From assembly GCF_020745735.1 (NCBI RefSeq), contig NC_083428.1:21328001-21392000 (forward strand): a stretch of 64,000 nucleotides of DNA. Direction: 5' to 3'. Numbering within the stretch: the first letter of the stretch is position 1; every line of letters begins with the position of its first letter. Positions 8,332-64,000 of the stretch are shown here, piece by piece. The stretch comes from Hemiscyllium ocellatum. Lineage: Eukaryota. A program made the position numbers and the translations under genes. The notes beneath the pieces were generated by a model. It had not been told where the DNA came from. It made no database searches and saw nothing but the letters and a program-made list of their open reading frames with translations.

Positions 8332-8632
8332 GATTAGATTACTTACAGTGTGGAAACAGGCCCTTCGGCCCAACAAGTCCACACCGACCTGCCAAAGCGC
8401 AACCCACCCATTCCCCTACATTTACCCCTTTACCTACCACTACGGGCAATTTAGCATGGCCAATTCACCTGACCTGCACATCTTTGGACTGTGGGAGGAA
8501 ACCAGAGCACCCAGAGGGGGGCCCACGCAGACACGGGGAGAATGTGCAAACTTCACACAGTCAGTCGCCTGAGTCGGGAATTGAACCCGGGTCTTTGGCA
8601 CAGCGAGGCAGCAGTGCTAACCACTGTGCCAC
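8332..8632 (-). mobile_element. HE1-type SINE
   Basis: Highly similar to 1541-1860. Confidence 0.9.
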
Positions 8633-9364
8633 CCAGAAATTCCTACCTATCTATATTTATTGAACAACTGTTTCTTCAAAACACATATACCAACAAAATG
8701 AACACAGAAAGAAATAAATTGAAATCATATAATGTCTTTCAGGGAATTCTAAAATGCTTTGCAGCCAATGAAGTGTAATCATTGTTACAACATAGGACAC
8801 TATCGCCTGTATCAGTTTGACCTTTCCTCTCATCTCTCTCGGTTTATGTTGTTCCACATTCCTTCTAAATATACATAGTTACTTCAATTTGTCATTAACA
8901 GTATTTTATTGACTCTAGTTAAAGATTTTACAGTATGATTGTTACTGCATAACGAACATTGCAGCTGAGGATTTATAGCTTAATGGTTATTAATTGTATT
9001 AGGAAAAAATCATAACTTTTTGGGGGTTTTCATAGTGCAACACTGATTACAAATAAAGAACATAGCAACTACAAGGTCACTATGACAATTAATCTAAGAT
9101 TACTTCTGATATTAATATTGCCTTCCTAATCTCTGATTTTCACATGTTTCATCAATTCCTTGGAGCTTGAACTCACCTTGTTTCTAGTGTTAGGATCATG
9201 AATTCATAGCTTGTAAGTGGAACTTCGGGAAATAAACCCACATATAACTTCTCTCTGGTAAAGCATGCAAGCATATCAACCAGCCAGCCACTGGAACTTA
9301 TTGCTATGTGTTTTGAAGTGTTGCTCATAGGATGAAATTTTAAAATACATTTCAAGACTTTAAG

Positions 9365-12654: not shown

Positions 12655-12950
12655 AAATAGAGACCATTCAGCCCACTGAGTTGACACCAACCCTCAGAGC
12701 ACCCTATCCAGAAACATAACCCCCGTTATCCTGCATTTTCCATGGCTAATCCACCAAGCCTACATATCCCTGGACCTCAGGGGCCAATCCATCTAACATG
12801 CACATAAAGTTGAACTGTGGGAGGAAACCGGAGCACCCAGCAGAAAACCACAAAAACACAGAGAGAATGTGCAAACTCCACACAGTCATCCAAGGCTGGA
12901 ATTGAACCTAGGCCCCTGGTGATGTGAGGCAGCAGTGCTAACCACTGAGT
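12655..12950 (-). mobile_element. HE1-type SINE (diverged)
   Basis: gggaggaaaccggagcaccc...tgcaaactccacacagtc...gaggcagcagtgctaaccactg. Confidence 0.85.
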
Positions 12951-13162
12951 CAAAACTTGCCTCACTGTACTTATTCTTTATATATACAATGCATGTTTAC
13001 ATTTCATAATCAAACATTCTCTGGCGCATACAACCCCAGGAATTTTAGACATTTCTAGTTCCTCAGTTTGTTATGAGAGAGTGCCTTGGAGCCTAACTGA
13101 CTTCCAGACATGTTAGGCTTTATTTCCCCTTGGTCAACAGAATGCAAGAGCAGACCACTTAT

Positions 13163-13465
13163 CAGCGGCACGGTGGCACACTGCTGCCTCACAGCGCCAG
13201 AGACCCGGGTTCAATTCCCGCCTCAGGCGACTGACTGTGTGGAGTTTGCACGTTCTCCCCGTGTCTGCGTGGGTTTCCTCTGGGTGCTCCGGTTTCCTCC
13301 CACAGTCACAAAGATGTGCGGGTCAGGTGAATTGGCCATGCTAAATTGCCCGCAGTGTTAGGTAAGGGGTAAATGTAGGGGTATGGGTGGGTTGCGCTTC
13401 GGCGGGTCAGTGTGGACTTGTTGGGCCGAAGGGCCTGTTTCCACACTGTAAGTAATCTAATCTAA
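13163..13465 (+). mobile_element. HE1-type SINE
   Basis: cagcggcacggtggcac(small deletion)ctgctgcctcacagcgcc...ggttcaattccc...ccacactgtaagtaatctaatct. Confidence 0.92.
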
Positions 13466-13914
13466 ATCTACAGCCATACTGCAGAACCCAGCCTAACTGA
13501 GCAACATAGTGTTCAATATTTGTTCATGTGTCAGATTAGTAATCGTTCATAGTCAGCTGTTAAGCCTCGGGTGTGCACAAAAATTGAAACTAGCTGAAAA
13601 TAAAAACTAGTTGCAAGCATGATTGCAGAAAATTTAAACCATTAGAAATAAAGCTCCCTTCAGCTAAAGGGCTGAATCTTACGGTGTTTTGACAAAGTGT
13701 AATTTTTGGCAAATTTTATAGAGTTTCCGTCCAAGAAGCTAACCCATTTCCTCACGCTATTGTCCCAGACTTACCATCATCAAATTATCTTCCCCTCCCC
13801 TCCACTCAGAATCTCTTTACCAAACCCTATTTGACTCCTCCATTACTCTTCAAACACCCATTGCATCTTCCCAAACATTAGCAGAAGGCGTAAAACCTGT
13901 GTTTTCACTAGTTT

Positions 13915-20501: not shown

Positions 20502-26843
<6,342 letters not shown>

Positions 26844-27029
26844 ACTTGTGCTTTTATCTTGCTCTCCTGTTTTGGGTTTTTTGTTTTGTTTGTCTCATCT
26901 GTGAAGGTATATTGGTGAAATTCTGTCTTATCTAGCATTGCAGCCTCAGGAGAATCTTCAGGTTCAGTGGTGGTTGGTTGGATAATTTCACTTGTACTGT
27001 ATCTCAGTTTGCATGTTATGATTATAACA

Positions 27030-27147
27030 AATAAATTGCTCACCATGAAATTAACTGCATACACGTTTTAGTTTTGGTTGACATGTTGCATTCATCTTAA
27101 ATAAAATTTATTTTTACTGTTGAAGTGCTTAGTTTGGAGTGAATAAA
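27030..27147 (+). terminator. Candidate OAZ1 polyadenylation signals
   Basis: AATAAA at 27030, 27100 and 27142, with T/GT-rich sequence nearby; the site actually used cannot be determined. Confidence 0.6.
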
Positions 27148-27854
27148 AAAGTTTGACCATTGTTTCAGGCCGCAAGGCTTAATCTATCCCTTCAAACTCT
27201 CCACCCCTTCTCTCCCTTTGAAGAGATGCCAGTGGAATGGGGCCAGTAGTTGAACTTAAAATTTGGGTCAGTATTGCAAACAAAATTGCTTGCTCTTACG
27301 GAATGTGTTGGTATGGTCAGGTGTGGTCACAATATTGTCATTGCACATCTTAAGTACAAAGGGAAATGGGAATTTCTTATTTAAATTTAGCAACTGTACA
27401 CAACAGTTGCATAGTTAGTTTTATCTTAAACGGAGTTCCTCAAAAGTGGAGGAGTGGGCTACTCAAATTTGTTTTAGCACAAAGTGGCAATACTGATTTC
27501 TAGCACCTGACATTAATTATCTTCCAAATTAAAATTTTTTGGTTAACTTTGAAACTGGCACATGTAGAAAACATCAGAGCAATAATGGCCTTTGATTAAT
27601 GGGCAACAAAAGAATATGATTGGTGTTTGTTTAAATTATTGCATGACACTTGAAACATTTTCAGGTGAATATAAACAGGTGATCGAAAGTTGAAAATTGA
27701 GGCAGCTTGACTTTGTCTAGTCTCCTGGCTTTGTTGATGATTGATGAACATTCATTATATCAGATGGATTTACAAGCAAATGTGCCTGTTTTTCAAAATG
27801 GTTATTCTCTTGAGCTGTTATGACTACCTACATCAGGATAGCTTCAATGTACTG

Positions 27855-29330
27855 TCAAAAGTGAGGCCCTGGAAAAGCACAGCAAGTCAGGCTGCACCCA
27901 AGGTGCAGGAGAGTCAACCTCTAGCATAAGCCCTTTGTCAGGAATGTTGGTGTGGGGCTGAGCAATAAATAGGAGTGAGTGGGGCTGGGTAAAGTAGCTT
28001 GTAAGGTGATAGGGAGATGAAGGTGGGTGGTGATGGTTACAGGTGGGAGGGAAGATGGACAGGTAGGATAATTCAAGAGGATGGAGTTGAGTATGTTGAA
28101 TCTGGGAGAAGGTGAATGGAGGAGATGAGGAAACTGATGAAATGACATTGCTGTGTTGTTGAAGGGTTCCAAGATGGAAGATGAGCTTTTCCAGGTGTTG
28201 GGTGACTTTGATTTGGCAGCGGAAGTGGCCCAGGACTTGCAGGTCTTTGGCAGAGAGGAAGTTGAAGTGGTCGGCCATGGCAGTGGGGTTGTTGGGTGTA
28301 TATGTTCTGGAGGTGTTCTCTGAACTGATGTGCAAGTTAGCGTCCTGTCTCCCTAGTGTAGAGTAGACCACGTTGAGAGCAACGGACACAGTAGATGAGG
28401 TATTTGGATGTGTAAGAAAATCTGCCAGCTGTGGAAGGATCCTTTGGGATCTTGGGTGGAGGTGTGGGTGTACAGACTTTACACCTCTCGTGGTGGCAAG
28501 GGAAGATGCTCAGAGTGGAGGGTGGGTTGGTGGAGTGTATGAAGGGAGGACGAGGAGGGGTTTTATCCTGATTCTCCCTTTCCACCCCACCAATATTCAG
28601 ATGCAATGTATTGTCCATTGCCACTTCCACTGCCTACAGTCAGCCCCACCACCAGAGATATTTCCCTCCCCACCCCATCAACATTTTGCAGAGAACATTC
28701 CTTCCTCGACTCCTTTTTTAGGTCCATGCCCCCCTGCCAACCCACTCTTCACTTCTGGCACCTACCCTTGCCACTGCAAGAGATGTAAAATCTGCACCCA
28801 CACCTTTTCCCCCTCACCTCCATGCAAGGACCTAAAGGATCCTTCCACTTGCTGCACATCCAAATACCTCATCCACTGTGTCTGTTGCTCTCGAGGTGGT
28901 CTCTATAGTGGGGAGACAGGGCGCCAAGTTGTAGAACCGTTTGAAGAACTTCTCCAAGACATCCACACCCAACAACCCTACCGTTCTGTGGTCGAACACT
29001 TCCAACTCCCCCTCTCACTCTGCCAAGGATATGGACCTGGGTCATGTCCACCACCAAATTCAAGCCACCCGAATGCCTTCTCTTCTGCCTTGGGACCCTT
29101 CAACCACATGGTATCAATGTTGATTTCACCAGTTTCCTCATCTTCCTATCCCCCCACTGTATCCCAGATCCAACCCTCAAACTCCAATCTGCCTTTTGAG
29201 CTACCTGTTCATTTCCTTCCTACCTATCCACTTCGGCCTATCACCATCACCTCTTTCCCCCCCCCACCCCTTCACCTACCTCCTGCCTTCTGAGCTGCCT
29301 TCCCCTAGCCTAAACCTCTCCCATTTTTTC
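27855..29330. mobile_element. Penelope-like element (Neptune type): inverted pair, 27855-28560(-) and 28560-29330(+)
   Basis: PCHCKRCKIC Cys motif followed by CTSKYLIHCVCCSRGGLYSGETGR (GIY-YIG) on +; PCHHERCKVC...TSKYLIYCVRCSQRGLLYTRETGR on -. Confidence 0.85.
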
Positions 29331-29344
29331 CTCTGTCACCTGGT

Positions 29345-29648
29345 CTTACAATATTGTCTAGCTATCACCATTGTTAGCAGCTAACCCGAGAATGCAACTT
29401 TAAAAAGAAGGGTTTTGTGATTTACACATGAAAGAAGTGAAACTATCACTGTATTCTAACAGATGAAACGCTTAACAGACAATCAGATTTTCAATGTATA
29501 ATTTCAGTTACATCACACTGCAAATTTTTGCTATAAATTCTGTTACGATCGAGCCCTCCACAATCACCTGATGACGGAGCATTGCTCCGAAAGCTCGTGT
29601 ACTTCCAATTAAACCTGTTGGATATAACGTCTTGTGTGATTTTTAACT
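29345..29648 (+). mobile_element. Penelope-derived terminal-repeat fragment carrying a hammerhead motif
   Basis: Nearly identical to 37018-37318 and related to 51815-52095. Confidence 0.75.
29565..29599 (+). ncRNA. Minimal type I hammerhead ribozyme motif, core intact
   Basis: CAC-CTGATGA-C-GGAGC-ATT-GCTCC-GAAA-GC-TC-GTG: stem I CAC/GTG, 5-bp stem II, palindromic AGCT in place of stem III. Confidence 0.75.
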
Positions 29649-30159
29649 GTGAACAACTTACAACAATCTTGGATTTTAAAGTCTATAGTGCTTTAAAACT
29701 AATATTCTTCACTTTTCTTTTGGGTATTTGTTCTCTGATGTCTGTTAAAGATTCATTCCAAGAACGTGGCATTTATCATTCTTTTCATGCTTATCTGTGA
29801 ACCCTATGACCTACAGTCTGATCCCATTCACACTAACCTTTTGAGCATTCAACTTCTTGACTTGTTTCCATGATGTTAGAGGGAGTTGCCTCTCAATTAT
29901 TTTTTTTGAAAAAAAATTCTTCACTTTTTGAATTTAGAATTTGGTTGTCTGCTTCTGCATATAAATGCTTGATTTTCTAATCAAAATTTCACCCTGGACA
30001 CAGCACTGAAATAGCCTTAATGAAATGAATGTGCGGTACTTCTCTGTTACTTCCAATCTTTGCAACTTTTGATGCAATTTCCCAGCTGTGTGAAACTTCT
30101 GTCTCCATTTTTCTTAATCCAGCCCTAGACAGAATGTCATTGCTGCAGTTTTCACAGAA

Positions 30160-30447
30160 CACGGTGGCACAGTGGTTAGCACTGCTGCCTCACAGCGCCT
30201 GAGACCCGGGTTCAATTCCCGACTCAGGCGACTGACTGTGTGGAGTTTGCACGTTCTCCCCGTGTCTGCGTGGGTTTCCTCCGGGTGCTCCGGTTTCCTC
30301 CCACAGTCCAAAGATGTGCGGGTCAGGTGAATTGGCTATGCTAAATTGCCCGTAGTGTTAGGTAGGGTAAATGTAGGAGTATGGGTCGGTGTGGACTTGT
30401 TGGGCCGAAAGGTCTGTTTCCACACTGTAAGTCTAAGTCTAATCTAA
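30160..30447 (+). mobile_element. HE1-type SINE
   Basis: cacggtggcacagtggttagcac...ggttcaattccc...V-domain...tctaa tail. Confidence 0.92.
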
Positions 30448-30529
30448 TTCTATCTGCTTACATTTGTGTTATTCACTGTGGACTGTCTTAATGTTAAATA
30501 GAAAACACTTTCCCTAATGACCAATTTGA

Positions 30530-30800
30530 AATTTTGGGACCATAGGTTTGAGTCCCACTGTAATGAAATTTGAATAAATTTGACAAAATCTGAAATAAAG
30601 AACTGGTCTGATGGAACCATGTAACTATTAATTGTTGTGAAAGCTCATTGATGTCCTTCAGGGAACGAAATCTACCATCCTTGTCTGGCTGACATGCTTC
30701 CAGATTCACAGAAAAGCGGTTGACCCTTAACTCTGGGAAGTTTGATGTGGACAATAAATGCTGACCTAACCATTGAAGCTGACATCTCTCAAACAAATAA
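30530..30800 (+). mobile_element. Old shark SINE-like repeat; other copies ~31490-31790(-), 38270-38455(+), 38930-39200(+)
   Basis: Shared motif (g)accatg.aact...tgtcctt.aggga.gaaat.t.ccatcctt...tggc...catg..tccaga. Confidence 0.55.
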
Positions 30801-32109
30801 AGAGGAATTGCTAATACTTACTGACATTTGAAACATTTCTTAAATGCTTATTTTTGTGGAGCACTAATCAGTACCTGTCATTTGTGGGTTTCAAGTAAAG
30901 GCATGTTAAAATCTGGAAATCATTGTAGGTGTCTGCATGCACAGTAACAGCAGTAGAGTCAGGAATGCAGAGCATGGAACCAAATTGCTGTCAGGACAGA
31001 AGGGAGCACTGAAGATTTACAGTTTCTCATCACTTACTACACATTCCCTCTGGAGTTCTCCAGGGATTTTCCTGAGAAAACCCAGGGAGTGCTTGATCAT
31101 TTTGTTTTTTTATACAGTGGTGTACCAAACTATTGTGATTTGAGGCAGATTTTAAAAGATGGAAGTTATAAGCGCTCAATCTACTTCAAAGTGGAAAGGA
31201 TGATCACCCAAATCATTAGCAGTTGACCATAATCCATTTGGAATAGCAGGAGATGTTATTGTCTAAGACTATAGTTTAAAACAAGACTCACCACTGGGTA
31301 TAAAAACTGGCAGTCTCCAATTGTGACATATACCGATCTTAGTTTTTTTAAAACTATTGGGCTTTGTTTTTGTCATCTCTTTTTTTACTTAAGTTATTAG
31401 TAAATTTCATCATTGGCTTAGTTGACTTAATGTTTTCAGTCCAGCAGACTGGTGAAGTTATTGAGCTTCTTGCAGTCCCACATTAAGGTCCTTTTTTAAC
31501 AAAACAAATCATTTCACGAGACGAATGTGCATATTGCTGGTAAGGACAACTTTAGTTGACCATCTTTAATTGCATCCTTGAACTGAATGATTTGGTAGGC
31601 AATTTCAGAGGGCAGGTAAGTATCACCTGAATTTCTGTGGTTCAGGAGTTATATGTAGTCTAGACTGGGAGGACAATAGTGAACCGGATGGATTTTGTGA
31701 CAAATTTTTCATGGTTACCACCATTATTGACACTATATTTCAATTCCAGATTATTAGCTGAATTAAAATTCCACCAGCTGGTGTTTCCTATTTTGTGCCA
31801 TTTTTCATTTTCAGTTGCTGTTGAAATTAGCTTCTGCAAAGTTATTACTGCATTATTGGTTGTGTTTTCTTCCACTTATTTGTTTATGGAACGATTTATT
31901 GTGAAAGACAACAGCTTTCTGATGTTATCTCTTTTATACTTACAAGTGAGTATTTTCTACATTTAGAAACAATTATTTCTTTTATTAATTTCCTGGGGCA
32001 GTTCCTAACCTTTTTTTATTTCACTTATTGGAGTGGATTGAGGTTGTGCGATTGTGTAATACAAATAATATAGTAATTTTTATGCTACGACTTTGATGGA
32101 ATTAAAATC

Positions 32110-34245
32110 AAGCATACTGGACCTGGTATTGGGAAATGAGGCAGGCCAGGTGATCAAAATTTCAGTGGGGAAGCATTTTGAGAATACTGGCTATAATTTC
32201 ATAAAGGTTTGGACACATACATAGGGACCAGTGTGAACTTTGGATGAAGGTATTAATTTGGGAGTAGGCCTATTATAACTGAATCAGCCAAGAATTAGAG
32301 AATGTAGATTGAGAGAGAGAGGCTATTTGAGGATAAATCCACATCTGACATGAGGGAATCTTTTAAAGATCAGTTGAGTGCAGGATAGGCATGTTCCTAT
32401 GAAAATAAGGACAGGAATGACAGGATTTAGGAACTTGGATGTTGGCAAATTATCAACTTAGTCAAAAAAAGGAAACATACCTAATGTCAAGGCAACTAGA
32501 AACAAAATCCTTGAAAAATATGAGAAAGGTAGAAAGAAGCTCAAATGGGGAGTTAGGAGGTCTAAAAGGAGCTATGAAATGTCATTGGCCAGCAGGGTTA
32601 AGGAGAATCCCAATGCATTTCACACATATGTTAGGAGCTAGAGGGTAGCTAGGGAAAAAGTAGGCCCACTCAAGGACAAAGGAGGGAGGTTATGTGTGAT
32701 CTACACAAAATGGGTGTGATCTATAATAAATATTTTACATCAATATTCACCAAAGAGAGGGCTGTGAGGGATGTTGAGGTTAGGGAAAGGTGTGTGAATA
32801 TGATCAGGTTGGTCAACACAATGAAGGAGGAAATGTTGAGTGTCTTGAAATACATTAAGGTAAACAAGTCCCCAGGGCTGGAAGGGATCTAACCAAGAAT
32901 ACTATGGGAGGCAAGGGAGGAAATAAGTGGGACCTTAACAGATATCTTTGCATTCTGTTCGGACTCATATGAGGTTCCAGAGGACTAGAGAATGGCCAAT
33001 GTTGTTTCTTTGTTTAAGAAGGAAAACAGATATTCTAATTAATTACAGGCTGTTAAGCTTGACGCGATGGTGGGGAAGTTGTTGGAGAAGATACTGAGAG
33101 ACAGAATTAATACACATTTGGAAGCAAATGGACTTGTTAGTGATAGGCAGCATAGCTTTGTGTGAAGATGGTCATGCCTCACCAACTTGAGTTTTTTTGA
33201 GGAAGCAACAAGAATGACTGACGAGAGAATGGAAAGTCTACTTGGACTTTAGTAAAGCATTCAATAATGTACCTCATGGCAGGTTCATACAAAAGGTAGA
33301 GTCTCATGGATTTTGAAGTGAGCTGCCTAAATGGATACAAAACTGACTTGGTCATAGAAGACAGCAGTAGTAGTGGAAAGGTATTTTTCGGAATGGAAAT
33401 CAGTAATTAGTGTTCTGCAGGGATCAGTGCTAGGACTTTTATTATTTGTATTATGTAATAATGATCTGGAGGAAAATGTAGATGGCTTGATTGTTAAGTT
33501 TGCAGATGACACCAAAACTGGCAGACCTCGCAGATCATGAGGAGGATTGTCAAAGGACAGAGCAGGATATATTGCAGATTTGAACAGAAAAATGGCAGAC
33601 AGAGTTTAATCTGGACAAATGCGAGGTGATGAATTATAGAAAATCAAAGTTCAGGTGTGAATTATATAATAAATGGTAGAGCCCCTAACAATGTTGACAT
33701 ACAGAAAGATCTGGGCATACTAGTTCACAGATCCCTGAAAGTGATAACAAGGTGGATAAGGTGACCTTTATTGGCTGGTATTTTGAATACAAAAGTTGAC
33801 AAACAAAACAAAAAACCCAAAACAGGAGAGCACGATAGAAACACAAATTTATTCTTCATCAGATAAGTCTCATTCAAATGAATGGTCTTTTTGGGATGTC
33901 CAGGTCTCAATCTCAAAGCCAAAAGGCAAAGATAAGGCTGATAATCAGAGGCTTTTTCCCAGGTTGGGAATGTCAACTACAAGAGGGCACAGGTTCAAGG
34001 TGAGAGAGGGAGAAATGCAGGGAAAAGTTTTCACAGAGAGGATAGTAGGTGCCTGGCAAACATTTCCAGTAGAGGTGATGGAATCAAACACATTAGCAAT
34101 GTTTAAGGTGTATTTTGATAGACACATAAATAGGAAGCAAATAGAGGGACAGAAACTGAGTATGGGCAATAATTATCAGATCTAAATAAGGACTAGGAAT
34201 TGGCGCAGGCCTGGTGGGCTGACAGGCATGTTTCTGTGCTGTATA
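32110..34245 (+). mobile_element. CR1-type LINE, decayed ORF2 (endonuclease end to 3' end)
   Basis: KVNKSPGLEGI, LDFSKAF-like (cttggactttagtaaagcattc), KFADDTK (aagtttgcagatgacaccaaa), TTRGHRFKVR. Confidence 0.88.
33798..33922 (-). pseudogene. Inverted partial copy of OAZ1 exon 5 / 3' UTR (source 26740-26894)
   Basis: gacaaacaaaacaaaaaacccaaaacaggagagc...ttattcttcatcagat...ggatgtccaggtctcaatctcaaagccaa is the reverse complement of the OAZ1 stop region with ~30 nt deleted. Confidence 0.92.
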
Positions 34246-34496
34246 TTATTATTGTATTGAGCAAGATGTATAACAGGCTGCCCACTTCCTATTCTTAATT
34301 TTACATTATTGCACATAAGTTGATCCATCCTGTTATCTTTTACTGCCCTTTACAGTATCGGCTTTAAAGTCTTGAACCCAAAATAAAGGAAATGCAGTTG
34401 ATTCTACTGAGCCCATGCCTCACATGTTTGGATATGCAGCAAGATTAGAGAGATTTTTACAGAAAAGTATCCCTTGATATTTGCAAAGATGTCCTT

Positions 34497-35195
34497 TGTA
34501 ATAGCAATGCATGTTCTATAAACTCCAGAGTGCTATTTGATGTTGCTGAAACATGTAACTAACTAGTTATGACTGGTATTGACTAAGATGTGTCTGTTTT
34601 AGAAGTGCTTTACAGGTGACAAAGTGAATGTGGTATACCTATAACTATGCCTGCCTGAATCTGAAAACCTGGAATAGGTCAGCGTTTACATTCAGTCAGA
34701 AACCACAAATACAAAGCATACAATTAACTCACTAAGAACATTTCTCCTAGAAAATGGAAAGCATAACTATTGAAATGTAGGGAAATGAAAGTAAACTCAT
34801 TTGAAATTGTTATACTGCTTTATAGGGATTCTAAAAGTAGTGAATTAAAAAGTGCTTTCTTTGGAAATGGGTTGCTTTCACACCAAATAATTGAGGACAG
34901 ACATCTGGAACTAACAATGAAATCCTAGATATACCATTTTTCTCTAGGATAACAGATTATACTTCAGAGTCAAAGTTTATCGGCTAGATTTTTCTCTCAT
35001 GCTTCAGAACTCCGAAAGTTGGGAGCCGATGAGTGTCTTGGATCTGCATTTGGAAGTACCACATTCACCTTTTCACCTGTAAAGCACTTCTAAAACAGAC
35101 ACATCTTAGTCAATACCAGTCATAACTAGTTAGTTACATGTTTCAGCAACATCAAATAGCACTCTGGAGTTTATAGAATATGCATCGCTATTACA
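34497..35195. repeat. 139-bp inverted repeat (34497-34635 / 35057-35195), 421-bp spacer
   Basis: Arms are reverse complements with ~4 mismatches seen, all near the ends. Confidence 0.93.
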
Positions 35196-36883: not shown

Positions 36884-37318
36884 TGATTTGGTGATGCCGG
36901 TGTTGGAGTACTGAGTTCAAAAACTGCAGGAGTTTATGTAAAACACTGTTATCTCACTTATTAGATTTGAATCAATCTAAACATCAGGTCATAGAACACA
37001 GGGGGCTAACACCTTCAACATATTGTCTAGCTATCACCATTGTTAGCAGCTAACCCGAGAATGCAACTTTAAAAAGAAGGGTTTTGTGAATTACACATGA
37101 AAGAAGTGAAACTATCACTGTATTCCAACAGATGAAACGCTTAACAGACAATCAGTTTTTCAATGTATAATTTCAGTTACATCACACTGCAAACTTTTGC
37201 TATAAATTCTGTGATCGAGCCCTACACAATCATCTGATGAAGGAGCATCGCTCCGAAAGCTAGTGTGCTTCCAATTAAACCTATTGGACTATAACCTGGT
37301 GTTGTGTGATTTTTAACT
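36884..37318 (+). mobile_element. Penelope-derived terminal-repeat element with short inverted 5' tail
   Basis: 37018-37318 duplicates 29345-29648; starts with atgatttggtgatgccggtgttgga, the inverse of the family tail seen at 56728-56752. Confidence 0.75.
37231..37265 (+). ncRNA. Minimal type I hammerhead ribozyme motif, core intact
   Basis: CAT-CTGATGA-A-GGAGC-ATC-GCTCC-GAAA-GC-TA-GTG. Confidence 0.72.
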
Positions 37319-51219: not shown

Positions 51220-52675
51220 GACTGTAAATGTGGGAAATTGAAACAAAAACAGAAATTGCTGTGAAAACTCAGTAAGTCATAGAATCCCTACAGTATGGAA
51301 GCATGCCATTCGGCCCATCAAGTCCATACTAACCCTTCAAAGAGCATCCCACCCAGACCTACCCTCCATATTTCTGTAACACTGCATTTCCCATGGCTTA
51401 CCCACCAGTCTGCACACCCCTGGCTGCTATTGGCAATTTAGCATGGCTAATCCATCCAACCTGCACATCTTTGGACTGTTGGACTATGGGAGGAATCTAG
51501 AGCATCCAGAGCAAACCAATGCAGACACAGGGAGAATAAGCAAACTCCACACAGACAGTTGTCTGAGGTGGAATCAAACCTAGGTCCCTGGCACTGTGAG
51601 GCAGCAGTACTAACCACTGAGCCACCCTGCCAGCTAAGATCTGGCAGGATCTGTGGTGACAAAGCAGACTGAATGTTTCAGGTCCCATGACCTTTCCTCA
51701 GAACCGATTGCAGCTAGGGAAAGGTTGGTGTATCTGTTGAAGATGGGGTAGGGAGAGGGAGGACAAGTAAAAAACAGTTGGAGGAGGAGCCCAGAGAAAG
51801 AGAACAATGGTTGGACATTAAACCTTAAGTTATTTCGAGAAAGTGACTTAAAAGGAATTTACATATTAATGAATTGAAACCTGCAACCCATTCTAAATGA
51901 TGAAAGAGTTAACAACAATGTAGGTTTGTTCAATATATCATTTCATTATATTTACATGACAACATAATCTTTTGCTATAAATTCTATGTCTTATGGTCCT
52001 GCTCCACAACTACTTGATGAAGGAGCAGCGCTCCAAAAGCTAGTGCTTCTAAAAAACCTTCTAAATATAACCTGGTGTTGTGTGATTTTTAACTAACGGT
52101 TGGACAGACACAGAAACAGATAAAGGTCAATTATAGCTGCTAGTTGGACCCATTAGTAGCTGACAATGGGTTGTGTGTGTTAGCAGCTCATGTGATGACA
52201 TGGCGTGTGTGCAAGGGTTGGGGTAAGGACGTGGGAGAATGTGCTCTGGCCCTAAAATTATTGAACTTAAAATTGAGCCCCAAAGGCTGCAGGTTCCCCA
52301 AGAAGAAAATGAGGTGTAGTTTTTCTAGTTTGCACTGAGTTTTGCTGCAGCAAGCCTGAGACAGACGGTTTGCCAGGGAACGCAGTGATATGTTGAAGTG
52401 GTAGGCGGTGGGAAGCTCAGGGTCATTTTTGTGGATAGAACATAGATGTTCTGCAAAGTGGTCGTCCAGTCTACGTTTCGTCTCCCCAGTGTAGAGGAGA
52501 TTAGATTAATTGAAGTGCAGGTAACTTGCTGCTTCACCTGGAAGGTGTGTCTGCAGCCTTGGATAGTTAGGAGGGAAGAAGTAAACGGGCAAGTATCACA
52601 CCTTTTGCTTTGTCTACATAGGTGCTGCCAGACCTGCTGCAGTTCACCAGCAATTTCTGTTTTTGCTTCTGCATA
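51220..52675 (-). mobile_element. Neptune-type Penelope fragment with nested SINE and nested repeat (51815-52095, +)
   Basis: HTFQVKQQVTCTSINLI...; hammerhead-like tail at 51669-51704; inverted short tail at ~52610-52675. Confidence 0.7.
51277..51630 (-). mobile_element. HE1-type SINE nested in a Penelope-like tail
   Basis: V-domain and head on -; host sequence gaaaactcag...gatctggcag resumes on both sides. Confidence 0.85.
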
Positions 52676-63305: not shown

Positions 63306-64000
63306 TCAACACCCTTCTTCCAGTAGAATCTGTAGCCCCCATACTGCTTGAAACACTGAGTCAGGGGTAGCGAATGCAAAGTACTGGCAGCAAAGCCAGT
63401 CTTCCAGTTTTACTGGCTTCTCATCATTTAGAAACCTTTCCCCGTAATCCAGCATCAGCAAAATACGTTTCACATCCAACCAGTTTTTCAGCAACAGAGG
63501 TGGGTCTTTCAGTCCAGTGTTCAGACTGAACACATTCTGGTCTGGACCCCAGAGTAAGGCCTGTAAGATGTGTTTTGCTTCACTGATATGTATTCTTTTA
63601 TTAGGATCTGCACACAAGAGTAAATGGGCAAGATGTTGAAGCCTTTCAGAATAAACAGATAACAGGCGAATCTGAGGCAGGTCTCCTGTACTGTATTCTT
63701 CATAATGCTTTTGGCTTGAAATGCTCTCAATAGGGTTTGACATGTGCAGCACCTCATAGATCAAAATGCCCAACTGAAACTCATCAACCTTTTTGTACTG
63801 GGATGCAGACATCATTTCGGGTGCTAACCGAACCTGGTCTGGGTGCAGTTTTTGATCAATCGCTGTACTCTTTTGCTTAGCTTTGGAGAAGTTGCTGATG
63901 ATAAGTCTCAGCAGCTGAGGATTAGTACTTTGTTTTTTGCCTCCTGGCTCAGCCACTTTAACCAACAGCAGGTTTTCCAGACGGAGGTCACAATGCGTAA
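63306..64000 (-). CDS. PEAK3: PEAK-family pseudokinase, C-terminal part of last exon (5' partial); probably PEAK3/C19orf35 orthologue
   Basis: Frame open to the window edge: THCDLRLENLLLV...RLIISNFSKAKQKS...RLAPE..SASQYKKVDEFQLGILIYEVLH...LLWGP...NWLDVKR..LM...LEDWLCCQYFAFAT, the hallmark PEAK1/PRAG1/PEAK3 kinase C-lobe and SHED helices. Family call is firm; the PEAK3 symbol rests on convergent adjacency to OAZ1 as in human 19p13.3. Confidence 0.8.
   Translation of the reverse strand, partial: THCDLRLENLLLVKVAEPGGKKQSTNPQLLRLIISNFSKAKQKSTAIDQKLHPDQVRLAPEMMSASQYKKVDEFQLGILIYEVLHMSNPIESISSQKHYEEYSTGDLPQIRLLSVYSERLQHLAHLLLCADPNKRIHISEAKHILQALLWGPDQNVFSLNTGLKDPPLLLKNWLDVKRILLMLDYGERFLNDEKPVKLEDWLCCQYFAFATPDSVFQAVWGLQILLEEGC

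Follow-up and report, generated by a model that had tools for sequence, protein, structure and literature searches.

OAZ1 and the LINE that holds its copy

We analyzed a 64,000-nucleotide (nt) stretch of Hemiscyllium ocellatum DNA (contig NC_083428.1, positions 21,328,001 to 21,392,000; hereafter, the window), which carries the antizyme gene OAZ1 and, downstream of it, a short antisense piece of the OAZ1 last exon lodged in a decayed long interspersed nuclear element (LINE). We call this piece the patch and the exon segment that it matches the donor. A 42-residue peptide from the exon was used to reach full-length antizymes and then the corresponding loci with 10-kb flanks in three species: Stegostoma tigrinum (locus L001), Chiloscyllium punctatum (L002, from an older assembly), and Rhincodon typus (L003). 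The features on which the analysis depends are as follows (window positions).

21919 to 21977, plus strand: antizyme +1 frameshift stimulatory element (Rfam RF00381 Antizyme_FSE, 87.5 bits, E = 5e-19).
26713 to 27180, plus strand: OAZ1 last exon with an ultraconserved 3' untranslated region (3' UTR), delimited by the conservation profile and AATAAA signals.
26740 to 26894, plus strand: donor segment, made up of the final 104 nt of OAZ1 coding sequence (stop codon included) and 51 nt of proximal 3' UTR, 99% identical across four orectolobiform genera.
32116 to 33797, plus strand: host CR1/L2-like LINE, part 5' of the patch, a decayed reverse transcriptase region ending ...FIGWYFEYKS (orthologues at L001 20248-21472 and L003 20507-22393).
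33763 to 33764, no strand: site of a further 24-nt LINE deletion, 35 nt upstream of the patch, seen in the alignment with orthologues and a paralogue.
33798 to 33922, minus strand: patch, a 125-nt partial copy of the OAZ1 last exon (self-blastn, repeat search, and MAFFT).
33923 to 34192, plus strand: host LINE, part 3' of the patch, the C-terminal ORF2 tail GKDKADNQRLFP...FKVYFDRHINRK.

The gene is identified as an antizyme because of the Antizyme_FSE element at 21919-21977. Its coding span, 20508-26843, covers 6336 nt, the same length as on record for the H. ocellatum gene, and its exons encode residues diagnostic of the H. ocellatum protein. The last exon begins at 26713, after a cag acceptor, is read in frame from 26715, matches Pfam ODC_AZ, and closes the coding sequence with a TAA stop at 26841-26843, which is overlapped by an AATAAA at 26839. 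Two AATAAA signals lie farther on, at 27100 and 27142, and conservation drops sharply at ∼27180-27183, just after them; on this sequence evidence, the OAZ1 mRNA likely ends at ∼27183. In a sliding comparison with Stegostoma, Rhincodon, and Chiloscyllium, the 3' UTR (26843-27180) is 98 to 100% identical in each 50-nt window, versus ∼75% for introns and intergenic DNA. The donor is intact, and the region around it (26700-26950) is 99.2% identical to both Stegostoma and Rhincodon, with nearby noncoding DNA at ∼75%. OAZ1 is a very abundant transcript.

The patch lies 6.6 kb past the conserved end of this 3' UTR, with OAZ sense on the minus strand, and is thus antisense to both OAZ1 and the host LINE. 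Self-blastn resolves it into two blocks: 33798-33883 is the reverse complement of 26809-26894 (86 nt, 91.9%, E = 6e-30), and 33893-33922 is the reverse complement of 26740-26771 (32 nt, 93.8%). A repeat search recovered the same inverted pair, whose arms are separated by 6903 nt. The copy is ∼8% diverged from the donor and, at 125 versus 155 nt, falls 30 nt short of it through deletions of 2, 8, and 20 nt (pairwise and six-way MAFFT alignments). The 2-nt deletion falls within a TG.TG repeat and the 8-nt deletion is flanked by TCCC..TCCC repeats. Two readings of the 20-nt gap are possible: a single deletion with a substitution, or losses of 9 and 11 nt, the second flanked by CAT..CAT. Neither self-blastn nor the repeat search found a third copy of the patch or donor sequence in the window. 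A lenient local alignment that seemed to extend the homology toward the exon start and the previous exon, as expected for a spliced RNA template, was rejected: it ran into the LINE coding sequence GKDKADNQRLFP.

The host LINE aligns with two paralogous copies in the window. Its reading frame stops after FIGWYFEYKS, which ends at 33797, and picks up at GKDKADNQRLFP (∼33925); 82 codons, WEAML...IYKIMR (∼245 nt), which the window paralogues carry, are missing. No filler, poly(A), or target-site duplication was found at the patch junctions, where LINE coding sequence abuts both ends.

Much of this had been anticipated in a first-pass annotation made from the window sequence alone. Its antisense copy of the OAZ1 stop-codon region at 33798-33922 was borne out by self-blastn, the repeat search, and MAFFT alike, as was its report that poly(A) and target-site duplications are lacking, and the self-comparison that it proposed as a check returned the patch and donor pair and no further copy in the window. 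Two of its details need qualification. It placed three of the small deletions at microhomologies, which holds for the 2-nt and 8-nt deletions; the 20-nt gap is ambiguous in this respect. Its figure of ∼245 nt lost from the LINE is correct relative to the window paralogues, but at the orthologous locus, the segment replaced by the patch measures 224 nt in both Stegostoma and Rhincodon.

Orthologous loci and neutral decay of the patch

Examination of the orthologous locus in related sharks, which the first-pass annotation had suggested as a way to date the insertion, found the patch present in C. punctatum and absent from Stegostoma and Rhincodon. In C. punctatum, it occupies L002 25645-25769, includes all three deletions, and sits inside a block that is collinear with the window (30447-35061 in the window, 22335-26907 in L002; 93.7% identity). 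Stegostoma and Rhincodon keep collinear flanks to either side of the site; in both, the orthologous interval contains no OAZ-like sequence, and an unpatched LINE, with the 224 nt intact, aligns with the LINE paralogues of the window. For Rhincodon, the collinear segments are window 31888-33763 and 33924-35061, which correspond to L003 20507-22334 and 22617-23759. Since the orthologous LINE is unpatched in these two genera, the LINE is older than the patch and was already in place when these families diverged. We conclude that the patch arose once, on the hemiscylliid stem, before Hemiscyllium and Chiloscyllium split. The 24-nt deletion just upstream is likewise common to the window and C. punctatum and is not found in Stegostoma, Rhincodon, or paralogous LINE copy c; it may have been collateral damage in the complex event that left the patch.

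Because the donor is nearly invariant, changes can be assigned to the copy. Five substitutions (4.0%) are common to both hemiscylliid copies, two are specific to the window, and three are specific to C. punctatum. The parent gene has changed at one site, from A to G, in both hemiscylliid parents; the copies retain the ancestral A (TCCCAAAAAG), which the parent genes of Stegostoma and Rhincodon also carry, and the patch is therefore a fossil of the stem-lineage exon. Between the two genera, the patch differs at 5 of 125 positions, versus 138 of 3276 (4.2%) in the flanks (Fisher p = 1): it has been evolving neutrally since its origin. In the 3276 ungapped flank columns, branch changes come to 2.3% on the window tip, 1.9% on the C. 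punctatum tip, and 13% on the internal branch. A rough clock, which gives relative depths only, allots ∼6.9% to the hemiscylliid stem and would place the event about midway along it.

How the patch arose

To compare the junctions, we took the unpatched LINE of Stegostoma and Rhincodon to represent the site before the event. On the left, the LINE sequence ...AAAAGTTG|GCAAG meets the reverse complement of the donor, ...GATGAG|ACAAAC, with 1 nt (G) in common; on the right, the donor ...GCCAAGAAAGC meets the LINE ...GA(C/G)AGGCATAG, with ∼1 to 3 nt in common, blurred by later substitutions. The first-pass annotation had proposed templated copying from the neighboring OAZ1 gene into a preexisting LINE, with loss of LINE sequence. 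The unpatched orthologues support this claim, which fits either break repair or a template switch during replication.

We think it likely that a kilobase-range inverted template switch or templated insertion, of the break-induced replication mediated by microhomology (MMBIR)/fork stalling and template switching (FoSTeS) type or of the synthesis-dependent end-joining type, left the patch as a neutral scar. One complex mutation, on the stem that leads to the Hemiscylliidae (bamboo and epaulette sharks), would have struck a CR1/L2-like LINE that was already resident and dead. The 3' end of a broken or stalled DNA strand would have left the LINE template and, through 1 to 3 nt of microhomology, annealed 6.9 kb away in cis, to the opposite strand of the OAZ1 last exon; there it would have copied ∼155 nt discontinuously, skipping 2, 8, and 20 nt at short direct repeats, before rejoining the LINE 224 nt downstream of its departure point. 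The predicted outcome is a LINE with 224 nt deleted and a 125-nt inverted copy in their place, an intact donor, and neutral drift without function ever since. In this scheme, the enzymology, the use of DNA rather than RNA as the template, and the origin of the internal deletions during the event are what we infer.

The internal deletions exceed what the flanks would predict. Across 3.7 kb of flanks, 11 gaps mark sequence missing from both hemiscylliids, 6 of them of at least 2 nt; the number of stem deletions expected per 155 nt is 0.25 to 0.46, versus 3 observed (Poisson P = 0.002 to 0.011). No indel has entered the patch on either tip since the genera split, though the tips total five substitutions, as many as the stem portion. 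There is thus moderate evidence that copying during the event was discontinuous, with slippage at short direct repeats, the expected outcome of low-processivity, microhomology-primed synthesis.

Several points weigh against a DNA template switch of this kind. The test for an excess of deletions is post hoc, with three events behind it, and P rises to 0.13 if all internal-branch indels, of either polarity, are taken as background. Microhomology at the junctions is minimal (1 to 3 nt) and, with the later decay, partly ambiguous, so that a captured fragment may instead have been joined by classical end joining. The copy count covers only the window and the loci of the three relatives. The 6.9-kb distance to the donor is far beyond the ≤100 bp searched in the short-range template-switch studies cited below. 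Finally, the donor lies wholly within one exon of a very abundant mRNA, with which an RNA template, nascent or mature, stays compatible.

A second inverted templated insertion lies 1.2 kb downstream of the patch and bears on the nature of the template. The segment 35059-35189 is the reverse complement of 34503-34633 (97%); the insertion measures 131 to 139 nt (arms of 139 nt, template 34497-34635), with its donor 421 nt upstream. It replaces ∼10 nt, with TA and ATTAC microhomologies (ATTAC on one side). It is absent from the orthologous point in C. punctatum, Stegostoma, and Rhincodon; it arose in the window lineage after its split from Chiloscyllium and is younger than the patch.

The same scar could have been patched from RNA, by a process akin to class 2 templated-sequence insertion, in which OAZ1 cDNA, made from mRNA or from a tethered nascent read-through RNA by a cellular polymerase or an endonuclease-independent LINE reverse transcriptase, would bridge a double-strand break in the LINE before the ends were joined. 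The size of the patch (125 to 155 nt) and its junction features match those of class 2 templated-sequence insertion polymorphisms (TSIPs; PMC5110952), the donor is fully contained in mature-mRNA sequence, with its conserved 3' UTR ending at ∼27180, and antisense orientation on the plus strand would be expected if the left LINE 3' end was extended on sense RNA. TSIP donors, however, are distant and scattered over chromosomes. A donor 6.9 kb away in cis favors local DNA or, at most, nascent RNA; it fits a local template switch, and for a patch made from free cytoplasmic mRNA, it would be a coincidence of ∼1 in 100,000 in a several-gigabase genome. No splice junction is included and hence no positive evidence of RNA; we agree with the first-pass annotation that a copy taken from inside one exon does not distinguish DNA from mRNA templates. 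The younger event at 35059-35189, in turn, copied nongenic DNA 421 nt away, which suggests DNA templating. On balance, we regard an RNA-templated patch as rather unlikely. Reverse transcriptase template switching is also known to yield chimeric retrocopies, and the host here is a LINE, but a retrotransposition chimera, in which the LINE reverse transcriptase would pass from LINE RNA to OAZ1 RNA and back, or a processed pseudogene truncated within the LINE, is scarcely credible. The unpatched orthologous LINE in Stegostoma and Rhincodon makes the patch later than the LINE insertion, the OAZ fragment is antisense to the LINE where an RNA-to-RNA switch predicts the same sense, and a processed pseudogene is at odds both with the missing poly(A) and target-site duplication and with a copy that ends 51 nt past the stop codon, ∼290 nt before the likely poly(A) site. 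We rejected both on these grounds. An assembly or chimeric-read artifact, or a chance likeness between a dispersed repeat and the OAZ1 exon, has a negligible probability: independent assemblies of the two genera both contain the patch, its sequence has moved 8% away from the donor and carries derived changes common to both genera, and the exon sequence occurs as the donor and one patch in the window and in L002 and as the donor alone in L001 and L003. Matches of the exon peptide in the protein library (P0001, P0049, and P0108) were rejected as evidence of a repeat; they are low-complexity proteins (tandem repeats in P0001 and P0108), not antizyme.

The first-pass annotation had further suggested that the patch acts as a cis-antisense element, with read-through or independent plus-strand RNA pairing with the OAZ1 stop codon and 3' UTR to affect editing, small RNAs, stability, or translation. 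A duplex along the whole patch is possible (RNAduplex, −176 kcal/mol), the target region is 98 to 100% conserved in four genera versus ∼75% for introns and intergenic DNA, and the patch has been kept in two genera. The duplex potential, however, follows trivially from the patch being a copy, and neutral DNA is routinely retained in the flanks over this divergence. The patch has diverged at the neutral rate (5/125, versus 138/3276 in the flanks), with five shared substitutions and 30 nt of deletions, against one changed site in the donor; Stegostoma and Rhincodon share the OAZ1 exon and lack the patch; and the patch lies 6.6 kb beyond the conserved UTR and poly(A) signals, in intergenic DNA between convergent genes. 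In C. punctatum, the 10 kb that follow the OAZ1 coding sequence contain no called gene, and the nearest downstream coding signal in the window is a kinase-domain exon at 63309-63965 on the minus strand, convergent with OAZ1. The neutral rate, the absence from two genera, and the distance past the 3' UTR leave the regulatory proposal unsupported, and we consider it very improbable. That hemiscylliid plus-strand transcription across 33.8 kb would give a ∼125-bp duplex with antizyme mRNA, and with it a lineage-specific layer of editing, small RNAs, or decay atop the polyamine-sensing frameshift control, is a long shot; if true, a template-switch accident would have supplied a gene with an antisense partner. 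We found no evidence that the patch has a function; it belongs to a known mutation class, of which it is a newly found and well-dated instance.

Other features of the window and comparison with known systems

The OAZ1 and kinase-like 3' ends are separated by ∼36 kb of repeat-rich intergenic DNA. The kinase-like feature at 63309-63965 (minus strand) is a 219-amino-acid open reading frame (ORF) whose match, to a protein kinase domain, spans the C-terminal half of that domain (Pfam Pkinase, E = 3.5e-7, just under the curated cutoff); a kinase or pseudokinase gene probably has its last coding exon here. In C. punctatum, a JSRP-like gene lies upstream of OAZ1, in agreement with vertebrate OAZ1 synteny.

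Apart from the younger inverted insertion, sequences specific to the window relative to C. punctatum are ordinary copies of LINEs or short interspersed nuclear elements (SINEs). Those at 8336-8639, 12658-13726, and 30155-30446 are copies of one ∼300-nt SINE family, 85 to 94% identical to one another and to 1546-1858, which indicates SINE activity after Hemiscyllium and Chiloscyllium split. Another ∼300-nt repeat, at 29344-29653, has a direct copy at 37020-37318 (93.7%) and a further copy at 51857-52094 (72%); the interval that holds it measures 311 nt in the window versus 960 nt in C. punctatum. A hammerhead-like motif at 29565-29599, inside this repeat, is probably part of the mobile element rather than of the OAZ1 locus. 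Nested inverted repeats at 28283-28981, with arms of 90, 48, and 45 nt and 73 to 92% complementarity, overlap two long ORFs, 27844-28389 (minus strand) and 28373-29293 (plus strand); a Pfam search of the large ORFs near 27.8 to 29.3 kb gave no match. The region aligns to C. punctatum and not to Stegostoma or Rhincodon, and it may be a hemiscylliid-specific insertion.

The patch is an unusually well resolved scar, in that the ancestral allele, the donor, the time of origin (hemiscylliid stem), and the later decay can all be recovered, and it serves as a clean example from nature of inverted template switching over kilobases, with skipping inside the copy. Its range falls between the events of ≤100 bp catalogued in primates and the large rearrangements studied in disease. 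A polarized genome-wide census in the slowly evolving genomes of sharks could measure the length, distance, and donor spectrum (DNA versus RNA) of such events. For annotators, the lesson is that exon-like fragments in LINEs are not necessarily retrocopies or exaptations.

Template-switch and templated-insertion mutations of this class have been described in several settings (PMC5453318, PMC8421209, and PMC7165422). Like the MMBIR/FoSTeS-type templated insertions known as MMB-TI (PMC8421209), the patch was copied, inverted, from a template on its own chromosome, the donor was kept, target sequence was replaced ("insertion with replacement"), the junctions may have short microhomology, and the event was a germline one fixed in evolution; its discontinuous copying is comparable to the "complex" multistep events of that study. 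Unlike them, its template lies 6.9 kb away, versus a search within 100 bp, its microhomology is 1 to 3 nt, and its length (125 to 155 nt) exceeds that of most. The patch conforms exactly to the four-point template-switch model of Löytynoja and Goldman (2017; PMC5453318): leave the LINE at 33797, copy the reverse complement of 26894 to 26740, and return 224 nt farther along the LINE. That model, however, was applied within one replication fork, over tens of base pairs, and explicitly not to long-range or multiround events, whereas the patch is of kilobase range and apparently multiround.

Class 2 TSIPs (PMC5110952) are patches of 73 to 414 bp that show microdeletion and microhomology and lack both target-site duplication and poly(A). 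The patch resembles them in being a copy of ∼100 to 200 nt from a transcribed region, placed at a break with a target deletion and, again, neither target-site duplication nor poly(A); it differs in that TSIP donors are distant and inferred to be RNA and the patch donor is the neighboring gene, within one exon. With polymerase theta-mediated end joining (PMC7165422) and synthesis-dependent microhomology-mediated end joining (PMC2943611), the patch would share microhomology-primed synthesis, repeated reannealing, deletions at short direct repeats, and filler that can take either orientation. Inserts made by polymerase theta are, however, usually shorter than ∼30 nt and templated tens to hundreds of base pairs from the break. 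Synthesis-dependent end joining of a double-strand break (PMC7165422 and PMC2943611) would nevertheless give the same scar as a template switch.

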